The notes under the pieces: model-generated | The model's database searches: none | What the model saw: the letters and a program-made list of their open reading frames with translations, nothing else | What the model was told of the DNA's origin: nothing | Translations under genes and position numbers: made by a program | NCBI GenBank assembly: GCA_977020255.1 | Contig: CDROCS010000506.1 | Location: 1,116,001-1,180,000 of the forward strand | DNA: 64,000 nt | Origin: Obrimoposthia wandeli | Taxonomy: Eukaryota | Reading direction: 5' to 3' | Shown here: one piece after another, positions 21,467 through 29,052 of the stretch | How positions within the stretch are numbered: the first letter of the stretch is position 1 | How the letters are laid out: every line of letters starts with the position of its first letter

Positions 21467-22126
21467 CTATAGCGAATAAATATAATCTAAGACTTCGTGT
21501 TTTTCGGCCTTATACGATATTTCTTCCAGCTCTGGATATCAAGACTGTCAGCGTGCAGTATCAATGATAGTTGCATTTTTAATGCAAGTGTCGTCGTAAT
21601 TGTATCGGAAGTGCTATGCGCATTGGTGGGACTGACGCGTGACTAACTCACCTTGCCCATTTTCAATAATATCAAACAAGAATACCGGTGTTATAAAGTC
21701 GTATATTTCTTATTACGGTATAATAATACATAAAAGTACTATTTACAGAGTAAAGTCAGTTCACCACAGTTAAGCATCTTTCATTTTATCGTAAAAATCG
21801 CGCTTCGCCAGGCGCCAGATCCGAATATGTCATCACCTTGAACTGGAACGCTAACTTTGCTGTTAAGCGATTGACTTATGAACTCCACAAATAGCCATTA
21901 CGCGATCGGCTGCTGTGCCGATGAATCCCACACGTTCAATGGTTTCGACTATCGACCCTAATTCAGGTTCGACAGATTCATCAGTGACACTACCACGGCG
22001 TTTAATTAAGCCCTGCCCTTCGCCCTGCCAACCTGTGATTGATTCATTGTCGGTATTCACTTTAAAACTAAATTTGTTTAAGCGATTAAGCAGAAACCAT
22101 AATTGCGTTAATGTTTGCACTGTCAT
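21467..22126 (-). pseudogene. Degraded DUF6314-like gene
   Basis: Clean N-terminus (QLWFLLNRLNKFSF...TGWQGEGQGLIK); C-terminal family-like pieces in shifting frames (TPVFLFDII...HQC; KHEVLDYIYSL*); multiple stops in between. Confidence 0.6.
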
Positions 22127-22356: not shown

Positions 22357-22865
22357 ATGCAAACTTTAAAGTCTGGTGATAAAGCACCATCGTTTACTCT
22401 GCTCAATCAACATAATGAAAGCGTTTCACTTGATTCATTCGCAGGCAAAAAAGTCTTAGCTTATTTCTATCCAAAAAGTGACACTCCCGGGTGTGCACTC
22501 CAAAAAGCACAAAACGCATAGATAATATCACAGCACTGGCTGAGCTAAATGTAGAAGTAATTGGCCTTAGCCCTGATGAAGTGGTTCGCCTAACTAAATT
22601 TTCTGACCGTGATGAATTAAATTTTAGCCTACTTTCAGACCCTGATCATGCTGTCGCAGATGCTTTTGGTATCTGGGGCTTGAAAAAATTCATGGGCAAA
22701 GAGTACGACGGCATCCACCGCCTGTCTTTCTTAATCGATGAACAAGGTGTTATTGAGCACGTATTTACTTCTGCATCGCTAAAAGCAGTGCCACTAGAAG
22801 GCGAATACAGCAAGTTTAAGACTAAAGACCATCACCAAGTAGTATTGGATTATTTAGTTTTGTAG
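22357..22865 (+). pseudogene. bcp: Frameshifted thioredoxin-dependent peroxiredoxin Bcp
   Basis: ATG 22357 reads MQTLKSGDKAPSFTL...YFYPKSDTPGC then stops (TAG 22519-22521). The C-terminal part (LNFSLLSDPDH...KFMGKEYDGIHRLSFLID) is in another frame. Confidence 0.85.
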
Positions 22866-22968: not shown

Positions 22969-23204
22969 GCTCGATTGAATCCAGTCATATAAGCATGTTT
23001 GAAATGCAATTTTGTCCTTTCTTATCTAATCAATTACTTATCATATCTAAGTACAGCCGCCATTCTGTAGCCATTTACGTTATAATATTTTGATTGTTCG
23101 ACGGTTATTTTAAATGATGTGTGTATTTACACGGTTATTTTAAATGAGAGTGGTAATAATAAGATATTTATGTTGATTGTTAATTTGAGATATTTTATCC
23201 GGGA

Positions 23205-23615
23205 TTGTTTATTCTTACTGCTATGTTAATTCTTAAATCCATAGATGTGGCTTCATTCATAGCATTATTTAGTGGTTGGTTTTTAGTGTTTACAATGTTC
23301 TATTTTGAACCTAGCACAATAAAAAATATAGCTATATGGAAGCTGAAAATTGAACGTGATGTGACTGCAGCTGAGGATATTAAACTTAAAGTAACAACTA
23401 TAGCTGATGAGCTTCGAGATATTACAAAACTGATTATAGAAGATACTTATATAGCAGCATCATCAAGCATGTTAGCTACGGGTGATAGCCCTGCTAAATC
23501 GAGATTAGAGACGAATCTTGATTTGTTATCAAAATTTGCAGAACCGGATGAAGAAAAATCAAAAGTTTGGTGGGCTGAGTTGGAAAAACTTTTTGAAGAG
23601 CGTCAGGGAACTTAA
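23205..23615 (+). CDS. Hypothetical membrane-anchored protein (possible 5' frameshift from ATG 23170)
   Basis: 136-aa ORF with hydrophobic N-terminus; adding one T in AATTTGAG would give MLIVNFEIFYPGLFIL... Confidence 0.6.
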   Translation: MFILTAMLILKSIDVASFIALFSGWFLVFTMFYFEPSTIKNIAIWKLKIERDVTAAEDIKLKVTTIADELRDITKLIIEDTYIAASSSMLATGDSPAKSRLETNLDLLSKFAEPDEEKSKVWWAELEKLFEERQGT

Positions 23616-23938
23616 CAAGTCAATAAGCATAAGCTAATAATAGATTATTCATGCCGCCATTTCGCCGCCATTGATTTTATTTATTAGTAGCATAATCGCC
23701 TGATCTTTAGCTTCTTTCTGCGCTTGGGTAAAGGGGTATGCTGACCTCGATAAAAAGGGGGGGCTGACCCCGAAATAAAGAAGTGTAGCGACCCCATTAT
23801 GTTATTTTCTATGATTCGCAGTTTCGTAAAAGCGTAAAGCTGCCTAACATAGGCAGTCCTTATGATTGCTGTTTGTTGTGAGTTAACAAGAACCTTAATT
23901 AAAGGGGATATTACTATTATTAATAAAAAGGGTTTAAT

Positions 23939-24757
23939 GTGGAACTTGATGATTTAAGAAGAAAAGTTAAAATCTGGCATTTGAAGTCTTATCGTATTTT
24001 TCTCAGTTTTGTAGGGATTTCAAAAGATAAGACATCAAGGAATCTATTTCGACTATTTCAAATTGCAATGTATGCCGTTGTAATAGTGTTTGTCACGAAT
24101 TGTTTCTCATTCTTTGATAAAGCTGGACGAGGATTTGGAGCCTTTGGTGATTACTTTGGCGGGATGCTTAATCCAATACTAACGTTCTTAACGTTTATGG
24201 GATTACTTATCACAATTATGCTGCAGCAAAAAGAACTTGGATTAACTCGGCAAGAATTGAAGAACTCATCAAGTGCGCTTACGGAGCAAGCTGAGACGCA
24301 GAGAAAACAACGTTTTGAGAATACCTTTTTTGCTTTAGTTGATAATCAAAATAAAACATTTGAGACAATTAATAAGCCGATCCTAAATGGAAATGGTGCA
24401 GTCATGGGCTATAAATTTGATAAATACCTTATAAATTGTCATGACCTACCTACAAGAAAAACTGCTACAAAAAAGCTCGTTGCTCATTACTATCAAGGTG
24501 CTTATCAAATATTGCGATATGTAAATCGTGAATATGAAGATATTCATAATAGCAATGAAAGTGTTAGTTCCCCCGTGTCTATTGAGGAAAACTTTTACGT
24601 TACTACTCTTCGTTCTACTATGCCAATTCAAGTGATTGAATTAATGAGAATATTTTATGAAGGCGATAGTAATATAAAAGGTGACTGTGAGGATGCAACT
24701 ATTAAAATGCTTATAGAACGATATAAGTTTTTTACTTCGCCAGGGGGTTCAACCTAA
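23939..24757 (+). CDS. Putative phage abortive-infection protein (putAbiC-like)
   Basis: GAFGDYFGGMLNPILTFLTF...LQQKELGLTRQEL...QRFENTFFAL pattern; two TM segments plus a coiled coil; next to the integrase. Confidence 0.65.
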   Translation: MELDDLRRKVKIWHLKSYRIFLSFVGISKDKTSRNLFRLFQIAMYAVVIVFVTNCFSFFDKAGRGFGAFGDYFGGMLNPILTFLTFMGLLITIMLQQKELGLTRQELKNSSSALTEQAETQRKQRFENTFFALVDNQNKTFETINKPILNGNGAVMGYKFDKYLINCHDLPTRKTATKKLVAHYYQGAYQILRYVNREYEDIHNSNESVSSPVSIEENFYVTTLRSTMPIQVIELMRIFYEGDSNIKGDCEDATIKMLIERYKFFTSPGGST

Positions 24758-25202
24758 CCGCATCCTCTAAATGCTCTGGTGCAAAATGCGAATACTTCAT
24801 GGTATCTACAATAGATGCGTGACCAAGTATTCGCTGCAGCACCAGAATGTTCCCACCATTCATCATAAAGTGACTCGCAAAGGTATGGCGTAATACATGG
24901 CTCATTTGCCCTTTGGGTAAATTAATGCCCGTCCTATCTACCGCATGACGAAAAGCTTTGATACTGCTACCAAATAAGTGACCGGTCTTTTTAGGCATTC
25001 GTCCCGCTAATTCTACAGATATAGGGATACTGCGCGGTTTATTACCTTTGGTATTAACGAACGTTACTTTATTATTATTTACATGTTCACCGCGTAAATT
25101 TTCTGCTTCACCCCAACGACAACCCGTACTTAAACAAATTTCTGCAATCCGTTGTACGTCTTTCTTACCCCCTTTCCCCGCTTCGAGTAAAGGGCCCGGC
25201 AC
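24732..25202 (-). pseudogene. int: 5'-truncated tyrosine integrase, phage 186/HP1 type
   Basis: ICLSTGCRWGEA (R), HVLRHTFASHFMMNGGNILVLQRILGH, TMKY, ends LNPLAK; the N-terminal domains are missing. Confidence 0.88.
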
Positions 25203-25210
25203 ACAGATTT

Positions 25211-25558: not shown

Positions 25559-25834
25559 TCATACGATTAAAGAAAGAAACATCACCACCAAGTAGGTACC
25601 ACCCGCGCTGACACTAAGGTGATAAATCATACTTTTGCGTGCTACATGGCATAATGTATATTTCGAAATGTGACGATTACCCCCATTTGTAGTGCATGAA
25701 TATACCGAATATCTCAGCACCTCTCATCGCAAGTGACAAAGGCTATACACCACGAAATAAATGTTCCCTATATCCTCATAGAAAATAAAATCAACGACTC
25801 ATGATGAAATAACCTCATATTTAACCGCGCTTAT

Positions 25835-25857
25835 AAGTTGTATATAAAATACAAGTT
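25835..25857. promoter_or_regulatory. NsrR-type operator
   Basis: AAGTTGTAT-ATAAA-ATACAAGTT, an 9-5-9 inverted repeat with one mismatch, resembling the NsrR consensus gATGyAT-N5-ATrCATc. Confidence 0.7.
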
Positions 25858-26022
25858 ATGTAATATGCACCTCATATTCAGTATGAATAATAGAAGCTTG
25901 CCTAACGAATCAAATATAGTTCAGCCAGCTGCGAAAGTGAATAAGCAAAATATCTTGCATGACACACCGCCGAAATTATTATCACTGCCCCACCCTATAA
26001 CGTACTTATAACGGAATTTATT

Positions 26023-27201
26023 ATGCACTCACTGTTTCTAAGAATGAGACTGATTCATTGGCTAGGCGCTATTGCATTATTTATTAATGCGCTCTTTTTT
26101 ACTGAGCAACTGTATTCGCAAATATTACAATATGTTGTTGTTTTCTTACTTATCATTCACGATCTTGATGAGAAATTCTGGGGGGTAGATTCCCTGCATA
26201 AAATTACTGATTACATGCGCGCATTTGAACAAAAAGATCTGTCGGTCGAATGTCAGGTCAACAGTGAATACAACAGTGAAATGGGCAAAGTATTAAGCGT
26301 TATTAACTCATTTAGACTCAATGTAAAAAATGCCTTAATAGACATTCAAACTCAAGCTATTGCCTCAGATGAAATTGCAAATACCCTGACGTCAAAAACC
26401 AGCGATATTGCACAGCGTATTCAAACGCAAGATCAACGCGTTGATAATATCGCCCACCAGTTTGAAATATTAGATGAACATTCTTTAACATTACAAACCA
26501 AAGCAGAACAAACGCAGGTACAGGTTCGTAATACGCGAGAAGGATTGCAGCTATCAAATGAAGCCATGAGCAATATGGCTGATATGATAGAAACATATGT
26601 CAGTAGCAGTGAAAATCTGAGCGGTAAGTTTGAATTATTATCAGAGCAAGTAAACTCTATTGGTGGCGTTGTATCAGTGATAAACAATTTGGCCGATCAG
26701 ACTAACTTGCTGGCATTAAATGCCGCCATTGAAGCCGCTAGAGCCGGAGAGCACGGTCGTGGTTTTGCCGTCGTGGCAGACGAAGTGAGACAACTTGCCA
26801 TGTCAACTCAAAGCAGCTTAGATCAAATAAATCAGATAATTGACGGTATTTCGACGGCGGTATTGCAAGCTGGCGAGCAGATAGAAGTGCAATCAAACAA
26901 CCTGAGCAACCTTTCATCTCACTCGAAAAACAGTCAAGCAGAAATCAATACAGCCTGTGATAACATTGACAGCATATTGAATTTAATTGGCCAAGAAGAG
27001 CGCCGAGGTCAGGTTACAGAGAATGTTGATATCCGTTATATTCACAAACTTGTGGTTGATGTTTCTCATGAAATACAGACATTAAAAACCTTGTCCAATT
27101 CAAATGCCGATGATTGTAACGAGCTGCAAACCCAAAGTAAGCGTCTTAATGAAGTATCTGATAATATTGTCAATCAATTAGCTGCGTTTAAAACCCAATA
27201 A
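26023..27201 (+). CDS. Short methyl-accepting chemotaxis protein without a periplasmic domain
   Basis: [36 protein letters not shown]; two adjacent N-terminal TM segments. Confidence 0.9.
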
Positions 27202-27212
27202 GGATAATCACC

Positions 27213-27635
27213 ATGAGGCTTACTACCTTTACCGACCTAGGCCTGCGCACTCTGATGTACCTTGCCGATTTACCACCAGGTCAACTGAGTAGTGTGCCGG
27301 AAATATCAACGTTACATAATATTTCCCAGAATCACATGGTCAAAGTCTCGGCTAAATTAAAACAATACGGGTATATAATCGCGATTAGGGGAAAGAATGG
27401 TGGTATTGCACTTTCTCGACCACAAGATGAAATTAATATAGGCCAGGTGATTAGGGATTTAGAAAATCACCTCGATGGCATAGACTGCAATACATCTAAT
27501 TGCCGATTACTTCCATCTTGTGAATTAAAGAAAGCATTGTCAAAATCGATGGATGCTTTTTTAAGTGTGATGGACAGTTATCACCTAAATGATTTGGTTG
27601 CCAACAAACAAAGTTTTATCAACAACCTTCTGTAG
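27213..27635 (+). CDS. nsrR: Rrf2-family NO-sensing repressor, NsrR-like
   Basis: MRLTTFTDLGLRTLMYLA...NHMVKV...RGKNGGI; three Cys (C-x4-C-x5-C) as in E. coli NsrR; may be a paralog. Confidence 0.82.
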   Translation: MRLTTFTDLGLRTLMYLADLPPGQLSSVPEISTLHNISQNHMVKVSAKLKQYGYIIAIRGKNGGIALSRPQDEINIGQVIRDLENHLDGIDCNTSNCRLLPSCELKKALSKSMDAFLSVMDSYHLNDLVANKQSFINNLL

Positions 27636-28218
27636 TATAACTAATGACGGGTGGTGATAGTAACTGCCACTCTTCGTTATATTCTATATCTGGCTGAGTA
27701 TACGTCACCGCACATTTGATCGGTACCGGTGCTGAAACATCCTCAATAATAGTTTTGTCTTTTTTAGGATTATCCCAACTACTTCCTATTGAATCGCCCC
27801 CCTCAAGTATGACTCTTAATTGGAATGTGCCACGTTGTCGATCACAATCGAGATTCAACTCATCGTCTTGATTTCCCACATCAGGAATAAAACAGATATT
27901 CGTATTAAGCCAATAAGTAAAATGTCTTGATAGATAGATGTAAGGGTATCCAAACATTATTTCTGGTTTAGATGGGACAATTTCTTCATCATACATATAA
28001 TGATGATCGCCATCTTTACCTTTCAGTACCGAGTGCAAATAAGCAATATCTTTTATCTCGGTCAATGCCCCTGCAATACTTTTTAACCGACTAATTCTCG
28101 CATCCTTACTGAAATTCAATATCACCGGTACCGCAGTGGCAGCAATAATTGCCAATATGATGATGACATTAATCAACTCAACCAAAGTAAAACCTTGGTT
28201 TTTAATATATTTATTCAA
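27619..28218 (-). CDS. Type IV (MshA-like) prepilin
   Basis: QG/FTLVELINVIIILAIIAATAVP cleavage-methylation motif. Confidence 0.85.
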   Translation of the reverse strand: MNKYIKNQGFTLVELINVIIILAIIAATAVPVILNFSKDARISRLKSIAGALTEIKDIAYLHSVLKGKDGDHHYMYDEEIVPSKPEIMFGYPYIYLSRHFTYWLNTNICFIPDVGNQDDELNLDCDRQRGTFQLRVILEGGDSIGSSWDNPKKDKTIIEDVSAPVPIKCAVTYTQPDIEYNEEWQLLSPPVISYTTEGC

Positions 28219-28605: not shown

Positions 28606-29052
28606 ATGATGAATTACCATGAAATTTTTAATGACAGTTATGAACGTTGTAATCGAAACCCTCAATTTTTTCATCTTTTTTATGATATTTTCCGAGGTAA
28701 AGGTGAGAAATACCGTCAAGTACTCGACCGTATCGAGAATATCGACAATATCGACAATCAAATTCAAATGTTAAACGCTTCTATCATTCTTATTTTTATG
28801 GCTCCCACATCCGAACAAGCCAGAATGTCAGTCAGGCAGTTTGGTAAACGCCATGGGCCTAAAGGCATCGGTGTCGATATAGAAGATTATGATGTTTGGT
28901 TTGAAAGTCTGCTTGAAGCTGTTAAATTATGCGACTCTGAATATAGCGAGCAGACCGAAAAAGTCTGGACGCAGTGTTTTGCGTTAGGCATGAAGATCAT
29001 GAAAGAGGAATTCTTCCCCGTCGAAGACATCAATAATACCTATTCTATTTAA
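28606..29052 (+). CDS. Single-domain globin-like protein
   Basis: FFHLFYDIF...QIQML...FGKRHGPKGIGV..EDYDVWFESLLEAV...W globin pattern with a proximal His; start likely ATG 28606. Confidence 0.75.
   Translation: MMNYHEIFNDSYERCNRNPQFFHLFYDIFRGKGEKYRQVLDRIENIDNIDNQIQMLNASIILIFMAPTSEQARMSVRQFGKRHGPKGIGVDIEDYDVWFESLLEAVKLCDSEYSEQTEKVWTQCFALGMKIMKEEFFPVEDINNTYSI

Follow-up and report, generated by a model that had tools for sequence, protein, structure and literature searches.

We describe a gene pair, consisting of a methyl-accepting chemotaxis protein (MCP) gene followed by nsrR, that probably forms a two-gene operon derepressed by nitric oxide (NO) and negatively autoregulated, and that would install a chemoreceptor under NO stress whose input passes through a two-helix membrane module. 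The pair lies in a 64,000-nucleotide (nt) stretch of contig CDROCS010000506.1 from assembly GCA_977020255.1 (positions 1,116,001 to 1,180,000; hereafter the window, with positions counted from its first letter). A first-pass annotation of the letters alone had proposed an NO-responsive chemotaxis module at this site, and this interpretation was supported by every test that could be computed, all of them in silico. The case is built on the anatomy of the receptor, the conservation of its residues, an NsrR-type operator box, gene order and the recurrence of the receptor family in NsrR, NorR and nir contexts. Further support, beyond what that annotation had offered, comes from linkage of the same MCP family to norR/norVW, DUF1971 and nirS in other genomes. 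The features of the locus are as follows.

25821-25850 (+): sigma-70-like promoter match, TTAACC (25821-25826), an 18-nt spacer and TAAAAT (25845-25850); 9/12 consensus matches
25835-25857 (23 nt): NsrR-type 11-1-11 palindrome AAGTTGTATATAAAATACAAGTT, lying over the spacer and the -10 hexamer; called by consensus score
25858-26022 (+): leader of 165 nt, from the box to the MCP ATG
26023-27201 (+): MCP gene, 392 amino acids (aa), with a membrane hairpin; PF00015, E = 2.6e-31 (Pfam)
26023-26190 (+): conserved input module, residues 1-56, with the H12 codon at 26056-26058 and the H46 codon at 26158-26160
26191-26322 (+): HAMP-like segment, residues 57-100; weak profile match plus structural model
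26623-26991 (+): core of the MCP signalling domain including the hairpin tip, residues 201-323; Pfam and invariant block
27202-27212 (+): MCP-nsrR spacer of 11 nt, containing AGGA (ribosome-binding site)
27213-27635 (+): nsrR, Rrf2-family repressor, 140 aa; PF02082, E = 1.2e-31
27486-27488, 27501-27503 and 27519-27521: codons of NsrR C92, C97 and C103
27649-27672 (+): weak terminator-like hairpin past nsrR

An NsrR-type operator ahead of the chemoreceptor gene

The palindrome that the first-pass annotation had placed over a TAAAAT -10-like hexamer, about 165 nt before the MCP, was found at 25835-25857, and the distance from its end to the MCP ATG is 165 nt. The published NsrR consensus is gATGyAT-N5-ATrCATc (PMC1274295), from which the core of the box, TTGTAT-N5-ATACAA, departs by one symmetric mismatch per half-site. 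On the 11-1-11 consensus the site scores 18/22, and it is the sole 23-mer in the window to reach at least 18/22, a level for which 30 dinucleotide shuffles gave a chance expectation of 0.1 sites per window on average. Moritella dasanensis carries the same site, and one change there raises its symmetry. A sigma-70-like match, TTAACC-18-TAAAAT, overlaps the box; promoter-like sites in that scan were not above the number found in shuffles. The 165-nt leader matched no Rfam family and showed no stable fold (z = 0.67). Its last ~65 nt align with the norW-MCP spacer of Moritella PE36 and DT_65 as homologous sequence, while the promoter part differs.

Conservation of the operator was assessed in a collection drawn from gamma-, beta- and epsilonproteobacteria, in which the best 80 of 107 matching loci were retrieved, using peptide patterns that included both His motifs of the receptor. 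A scan of 763 kb from these 80 species loci with the 11-1-11 consensus, at an intergenic cut-off of at least 17/22, gave 22 intergenic matches. All but one of them, distributed over 16 loci, lie no more than ~250 nt ahead of the MCP or of the gene that opens its operon (21 of 22; Fisher p = 2e-19 for enrichment over other intergenic DNA). The box is thus conserved across genomes, as the first-pass annotation had anticipated, and this extends to Photobacterium (including P. profundum) and Vibrio sp. Of7-15, where a single box stands before the MCP and nsrR does not adjoin. Operons that include a hemerythrin-like gene carry two tandem boxes. No NsrR boxes were found in norVW- or DUF1971-linked MCP loci, an absence that fits mutually exclusive control by NorR and NsrR. 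Inspection of the 300 nt upstream of the MCP in all loci for FNR/DNR boxes and sigma-54 promoters revealed nothing consistent.

The window has another NsrR-box-like palindrome at 21568-21590, TAGTTGCATTTTTAATGCAAGTG, whose TTGCAT-N5-ATGCAA core is perfect. It lies in a gap of ~960 nt between a gcvR-like gene and bcp, with no obvious downstream gene, and is not among the core-motif matches of M. dasanensis.

The adjoining regulator

As annotated in the first pass, nsrR begins 11 nt after the MCP stop, and no terminator-like site was found between the two genes in a hairpin scan. The Rrf2 domain of the protein (PF02082, residues 3-131) covers nearly its full length. Its best NCBIfam model is NsrR (NF008240), at 152.9 bits against 99 bits for RirA, a score that lies below the equivalog cut-off of 182 bits. 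The best match in the PDB is S. coelicolor NsrR (5N07), with C92, C97, C103, D8 and the MRLTxFTD N-terminus all aligned; the three cysteines follow C-x4/5-C-x5-C spacing, and D8 is present.

The same Moritella contig also encodes a Cys-less NsrR paralog, 49% identical to the protein described above (G000:C506:2826381-2826782; locus L002 1471-1917, minus strand). At the three cluster-Cys positions it has D, D/N/S and Y, and it is kept in all five Moritella genomes examined.

A receptor with a membrane hairpin as its candidate input

The MCP is 97% identical to its counterpart in M. dasanensis, and PF00015 is the sole Pfam domain detected in it. In the AlphaFold2 model (40-sequence alignment, pLDDT 86), helices spanning residues 4-26 and 30-69 are joined by a 3-residue turn and followed by a connector and a long helical hairpin whose tip falls at about residue 241. 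Because the turn joining the two helices is so short, the modelled receptor is one without a periplasmic domain, which agrees with the first-pass description of two adjacent, His-flanked transmembrane helices. H12 (IHWLG) and H46 (IIHDLDEK) lie near the cytoplasmic ends of both helices at matching depth. The module comprises an N-terminal SLFxRMRxxHW sequence with the first transmembrane helix, the 3-residue turn, and the second transmembrane helix ending in HDxDEKxWGV. Judged from the helix boundaries, its polar residues would form layers by depth from the turn: N22/Q36 would lie in the outer leaflet and H12/H46 close to the inner interface, followed by R9/D49 and R7/E50.

In a profile comparison, residues 57-100 weakly matched the HAMP part of PcaY and Tsr, two chemoreceptors (E = 0.07), and in the model they adopt a helix-connector-helix arrangement. 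No Pfam HAMP match was obtained for the window protein, and among eight diverse members searched in Pfam with E up to 10 one showed a weak PF00672 match. Further along, an invariant block at ~226-256 of the signalling domain includes the hairpin tip. Since nothing else lies N-terminal to the HAMP-like segment, the two-helix module is the predicted input.

Searches for a sensor of known type gave no hit in this module. No ligand-binding domain of known type was found in the MCP in Pfam, NCBIfam or the PDB, with NCBIfam returning generic MCP models only, and the Pfam search of eight members found no known domain in the N-terminal module apart from the weak HAMP match. A PDB profile search of the module yielded a weak HAMP-like match only, and a feature search of the ESM Atlas returned generic two-helix/HAMP fragments and no lead. 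Two candidate identities were considered and rejected: the module is not assigned to the MHYT domain, as PF03707 matched neither the MCP (E up to 10) nor the M. dasanensis genome, and the receptor is not assigned to the heme-based MCP sensors, as no PAS-heme or globin domain accompanies PF00015.

A word-based search returned hundreds of full-length relatives of 388-392 aa from Moritella, Psychromonas, Shewanella, Photobacterium, Marinomonas and Thalassomonas, with an extremely conserved N-terminus. For an unbiased test of conservation, an HMMER profile of residues 1-140 was compared with 1.84 billion representative proteins. This search found 147 clusters only, nearly all of them ~380-aa MCPs, meaning that the module is almost always fused to an MCP output. 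Residues were counted on 88 full-length representatives from this search, which are free of circularity because they were found by profile and not by motif. Both histidines proved to be conserved, as the first-pass annotation had predicted, with H12 kept in 85/86 and H46 in 86/87 representatives. Q36 and D49 are each kept in 86/87 and R7 in 80/80, and E50 is kept in 82 representatives with Asp in 4 more. The near-invariant set comprises R7, H12, N22, T27, Q36, H46, D47, D49, E50 and G54; C77 is not conserved. We conclude that the family is small and previously uncharacterised and that its input module is undescribed.

Linkage of the receptor family to NO-stress regulons

The MCP-nsrR pair is syntenic beyond the window, as the first-pass reading requires: nsrR lies directly downstream and co-directional in 11 of the 80 loci, from six genera, namely Moritella (2), Psychromonas (2), Colwellia (2), Oceanospirillum, Oleiphilus and Marinomonas (3). 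Five loci have the MCP after norR<-norV-norW, with a DUF1971 (YeaR-like) gene in between in three of them; the order norR<-norV-norW-(DUF1971)-MCP occurs in Moritella PE36, DT_65, a Vibrio metagenome-assembled genome and Shewanella profunda. DUF1971 directly precedes the MCP in three more Vibrio loci, one of them behind a divergent norR, which brings DUF1971 linkage to 6 loci. Three Sulfuricella-type betaproteobacterial loci (L050 6112-8909; L051; L053) have, downstream of the MCP, a radical-SAM (NirJ-like) gene and next the gene for the cytochrome cd1 nitrite reductase NirS. Linkage with the NO-stress regulon is recurrent in several lineages (box in 16 loci, nsrR in 11, norR/norVW in 5, DUF1971 in 6 and nirS in 3).

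A quick maximum-likelihood tree divides the family into a marine gammaproteobacterial clade, to which the window belongs, and a second clade of 40 rows with beta-, epsilon- and other gammaproteobacteria. At least one NO link (nsrR, box, norVW or DUF1971) was found in 28 of 34 rows of the first clade, with the Enterovibrio/Fluctibacter branch left out, whereas links in the second clade are sparse (nirS in 3 rows, box in 1). The NO association is therefore strong for the clade of the window and weak elsewhere.

Further genes stand upstream in the operon in Psychromonas, Colwellia, Oceanospirillum and Shewanella profunda, encoding an EAL phosphodiesterase and a small protein whose hemerythrin matches are sub-threshold (PF01814, E = 0.001 to 0.06, several members). 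The operons with tandem boxes (L021 3723-4986; L022 2805-4833; L026 1286 onward; L054 3690-4896) consist of the hemerythrin-like gene, a stand-alone EAL gene, the MCP and, except in L054, nsrR, and such operons may be modules that connect NO to cyclic di-GMP (c-di-GMP) as well as to chemotaxis. EAL or GGDEF-EAL proteins are encoded beside the MCP in 22 of 80 loci; these neighbours match the theme of NO-linked dispersal, which is suggestive only because such genes are common.

Two of these neighbourhoods show peculiarities of their own. The norV and norW frames of Shewanella profunda, which stand upstream of DUF1971, the hemerythrin-like gene, EAL and the MCP, look shortened or split (L054 965-3156; 360 aa; 152 + 132 aa). 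The Thiobacillus MCP is convergent with a gene for a 1087-aa protein (L055 6180-9440, minus strand), a multi-sensor c-di-GMP enzyme with Tll0287-like, HAMP, PAS, GGDEF, EAL and CZB regions.

Exchange of regulators within Moritella

Every Moritella examined has norR<-norVW beside a gene for an M32 peptidase. The MCP of PE36 and DT_65 is flanked by norW and the peptidase gene, a slot that has no MCP in M. dasanensis and JT01, where the receptor gene is located elsewhere together with nsrR. The MCPs of the two arrangements are 89% identical. A Cys-bearing NsrR is found only in those Moritella that have the MCP-nsrR cassette (the window, M. dasanensis and JT01) and is absent from PE36 and DT_65.

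The detoxification genes of this genus have a different upstream organisation. Moritella hmp has a TGGCAC-N5-CTGCA sigma-54 promoter behind three GT-N7-AC-type repeats and no NsrR box, and appears to be under NorR-type and not NsrR control. In two loci (L106 1200-1345; L135 ~1700-1880) the region upstream of hmp contains three GTTGTCA...TGACAAC-type repeats together with TGGCACGG-N3-CTGCA. No NsrR box was found upstream of Moritella nnrS. A genome-wide core-motif scan of M. dasanensis gave 9 sites versus 2 in the control, with the MCP site alone being a full palindrome. Because hmp and nnrS are without a box and the MCP site is the sole full palindrome, NsrR is probably devoted, or nearly so, to the MCP operon in these Moritella.

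Proposed mechanism and alternative explanations

NsrR binding, NO induction, co-transcription, a cofactor and a behavioural output are all predictions from sequence, and together they suggest the following mechanism. When NO is absent, holo-NsrR, with its [4Fe-4S] cluster held by C92, C97, C103 and D8, would occupy the palindrome over the -10 hexamer and block transcription. NO would nitrosylate the cluster and release NsrR from the DNA, leading to synthesis of the chemoreceptor and of more NsrR, and once NO falls the fresh NsrR would close the operon again; negative autoregulation is expected because nsrR sits behind its target gene. The receptor made in this way would have two transmembrane helices, a HAMP-like segment and a long signalling hairpin. 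In the receptor dimer the module may bind an iron cofactor, either heme or NorR-like non-heme iron, as its invariant His pair and its Asp/Glu cluster at the inner membrane interface would be suited to either kind of site, the non-heme one being rich in carboxylates. The receptor would then signal NO, or something that follows directly from it, via the HAMP-like segment to CheA, and cells under nitrosative stress would gain a taxis response. A more speculative version, which we put forward tentatively, is that the module is a new class of membrane-embedded NO sensor, in which four His (two per subunit) and the Asp/Glu cluster, placed where the receptor dimer meets the inner leaflet, hold a heme or non-heme iron that binds membrane-partitioned NO and drives HAMP directly.

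Several observations weigh against this mechanism. The promoter is assigned by its consensus match alone, nsrR adjoins the MCP in only 11 of 80 loci and the second clade has few NO links. The score of the regulator falls short of the NCBIfam cut-off, and the Cys-less paralog present in all Moritella might bind the same box. In PE36 the spacer between norW and the MCP is 125 nt long and contains a hairpin, and co-transcription of norVW with the MCP is uncertain. Conservation of the histidines among the 80 loci is partly circular because the retrieval patterns included both His motifs. Finally, no heme-, metal- or gas-binding domain is detectable in the MCP, and the idea of a cofactor is therefore derived from residue conservation and geometry alone.

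The lack of a known gas-binding domain would also be explained if the operon is regulated as proposed and the receptor does not sense NO. The MCP could be an energy- or redox-taxis transducer whose HDxDE cluster reads the redox state of quinones, the proton-motive force or the pH of the interface, or could be the partner of a separate membrane sensor as in HtrI/HtrII, and be expressed when NO poisons respiration. The polar layers formed by N22/Q36 and H12/H46 could then be protein-protein or quinone contacts rather than a metal site, and many hosts in the second clade are denitrifiers or sulfur oxidisers without a link to an NO regulator. Two-helix transducers with intramembrane input exist, including HtrI/II and Aer. 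However, the 80 loci contain no conserved membrane partner gene by the MCP, whose frequent neighbours (NsrR, NorVW, DUF1971, EAL and hemerythrin-like proteins) are cytoplasmic, and the repeated, tight coupling is to NO-specific regulators and not to those of the Fnr/Arc type, with no FNR/DNR boxes upstream. We regard a receptor that does not itself sense NO as a serious alternative, though on balance the less likely one.

The remaining explanations concern the palindrome. Autoregulation is common among Rrf2 repressors and the gene pair is together in 11/80 loci only, as would be expected if the site served nsrR alone and the MCP were a passenger; this is very improbable given that boxes precede the MCP in Photobacterium and Vibrio with no adjoining nsrR, that the same family is attached to norVW, DUF1971 and nirS, and that the MCP moves between NsrR and NorR contexts in Moritella. 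Binding mainly by another regulator, such as the Cys-less paralog, would leave the operon unresponsive to NO. The 49% identity of this paralog, its similar recognition helix region (SRNHIAKV vs SQNHMVKV) and its loss of all three cluster Cys are in keeping with such a role, but the box co-occurs with the Cys-bearing NsrR and is absent before the MCP of PE36 and DT_65, which have the Cys-less paralog only, and the box-bearing loci of other genera fit the classical NsrR consensus. We consider this explanation improbable. That the palindrome is a chance inverted repeat is scarcely credible, even though the region is AT-rich and contains the second box-like site at 21568 without an obvious target gene, as shuffles predict 0.1 sites per window and the site is kept across genera at the same relative position with p = 2e-19.

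Source contig and neighbouring genes

The window is part of a Moritella contig (C506) of at least 2.8 Mb within an assembly of 1.35 Gb and 6912 contigs. Given the 97% identity of the MCP to the M. dasanensis protein and the size of the assembly, we infer that this is a bacterial contig inside a far bigger, probably eukaryotic assembly. The same assembly has other bacterial contigs: a divergent hmp/nsrR pair of Vibrio-like type is on C3739, and C1101 carries a Moritella-like hmp with 83% identity to that of M. dasanensis. A public contig of a related strain covers 25870-27286, including the MCP-nsrR junction, and shows DNA contiguity only. The locus is also present on contigs from public marine, ice and food metagenome runs. 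Over 157 nt of the MCP (26317-26473), the sequence recurs unchanged in one metatranscriptome contig. This is weak evidence of expression and possibly reflects DNA carry-over; it therefore proves neither induction nor transcript ends.

Differences from M. dasanensis were observed on both sides of the gene pair. The gene that converges on nsrR and overlaps its last 17 nt (27619-28218, minus strand) is type IV pilin-like and has a prepilin N-methylation motif; at its position M. dasanensis has a metallo-beta-lactamase-fold gene instead. The terminator-like hairpin at 27649-27672 falls within this pilin-like open reading frame (ORF), and such hairpins are no commoner than in shuffles. The bcp peroxiredoxin gene (22357-22865, plus strand) consists of two overlapping ORFs of 54 and 124 aa with a frameshift near the catalytic Cys, and is intact with 169 aa in M. 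dasanensis; it is either a pseudogene or the result of an assembly indel. Between bcp and the upstream region of the MCP, ~2.5 kb (~23000-25210) is absent from the equivalent place in M. dasanensis. Besides two uncharacterised ORFs, this segment contains the C-terminal part of a phage-type integrase (24732-25202, PF00589), and it looks like the remnant of a small mobile element.

A single-domain globin-like ORF (28609-29052, plus strand) lies ~1 kb downstream of nsrR. It is below the Pfam Globin threshold and matches Pseudomonas PA3967 (PDB 1TU9, E = 4.9e-7) and Methylacidiphilum hemoglobin-like domains. This ORF has no NsrR box upstream and was set aside as a member of the module.

Significance

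Bacteria detoxify NO and alter their biofilm behaviour in response to it. To our knowledge, and in the literature searched, no receptor has been described whose purpose is swimming along NO gradients and whose expression is turned on by the NO stress regulators. Full-text searches, with RegPrecise outside their scope, found no literature linking NsrR or NorR to this MCP family. What appears to be new here is a family of MCPs with an undescribed membrane input module, together with its predicted and conserved membership in NsrR and NorR regulons. If the module is indeed a membrane-embedded NO sensor, this would be the first bacterial chemoreceptor dedicated to NO, with NsrR or NorR bringing about its expression when it is needed. 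The candidate is compact, a receptor of ~390 aa that can take its input only through a membrane module of 56 residues that has near-invariant His, Asp and Glu residues.

The division of labour in Moritella is unusual, as hmp and norVW have NorR/sigma-54-type control and NsrR apparently serves a behavioural output, and the same receptor is wired to either regulator in closely related strains. Members of the family occur in culturable marine bacteria, including Moritella dasanensis, Marinomonas sp. MED121 and Photobacterium profundum; regulation, cofactor content and taxis are therefore directly testable.

Comparison with known systems

The NsrR regulon of gamma- and betaproteobacteria comprises hmp, ytfE/dnrN, hcp-hcr, nnrS and tehB/yeaR-like genes, and the text and site tables of a comparative study of it contain no MCP, P. 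profundum included (Rodionov et al. 2005, PMC1274295). The locus in the window resembles this regulon in having a three-Cys Rrf2 repressor, an operator of the gATGyAT-N5-ATrCATc type over the promoter and a predicted derepression by NO, and a DUF1971 (tehB/YeaR-like) gene travels with the MCP in Vibrio and Shewanella. It differs in that the target is a chemoreceptor and not a detoxification enzyme, and in that hmp and nnrS of Moritella are without a box. The first-pass annotation had stated that NsrR normally controls detoxification genes and not chemoreceptors, and the published regulon bears this out in listing no MCP. In its absolute form, that NsrR is never related to chemotaxis, the statement is slightly too strong because NsrR of E. 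coli has reportedly been tied to motility genes, in work said to have been published by Partridge and colleagues in Mol Microbiol in 2009. This would be a precedent for an influence of NsrR on motility or chemotaxis behaviour. Control in E. coli reportedly involves flagellar regulatory promoters with half-sites, in contrast to the full 11-1-11 site found here before a dedicated receptor gene that is putatively co-transcribed with nsrR.

The architecture of the receptor resembles that of the archaeal transducers HtrI/HtrII, in which a two-helix membrane anchor with scarcely any or no external domain leads into HAMP, here a HAMP-like segment, and then an MCP hairpin. The Htr proteins differ in receiving their signal from a co-encoded sensory rhodopsin, whereas no conserved membrane partner gene stands beside members of the present family. 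The MHYT domain (PF03707) is a predicted Cu-based sensor of O2, CO or NO, as in NbdA. It is similar in that its paired transmembrane helices carry conserved Met, His, aromatic and Thr residues and in the gas-sensing role proposed for it. In the MCP the His residues are at the cytoplasmic and not the outer ends of the helices, and the sequence does not match PF03707. The NO sensor NorR has a GAF domain whose mononuclear non-heme iron is coordinated mostly by Asp, with Cys and Arg in addition. Its carboxylate-rich set of iron ligands is reminiscent of the invariant D47, D49, E50, H12, H46, R7 and R9 of the MCP, which has neither a GAF domain nor sequence similarity to NorR, and any binding of iron by the MCP is pure conjecture. 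Finally, Aer2 (PAS-heme) and HemAT (globin) are heme-based gas chemoreceptors, and BdlA of Pseudomonas aeruginosa acts in NO-induced dispersal. These proteins share with the present family an MCP-type output tied to diatomic gases or to behaviour triggered by NO. The difference lies in the input: in place of a PAS, globin or other soluble sensor domain, the candidate in this family is a membrane hairpin carrying His, Asp and Glu at the cytoplasmic interface.

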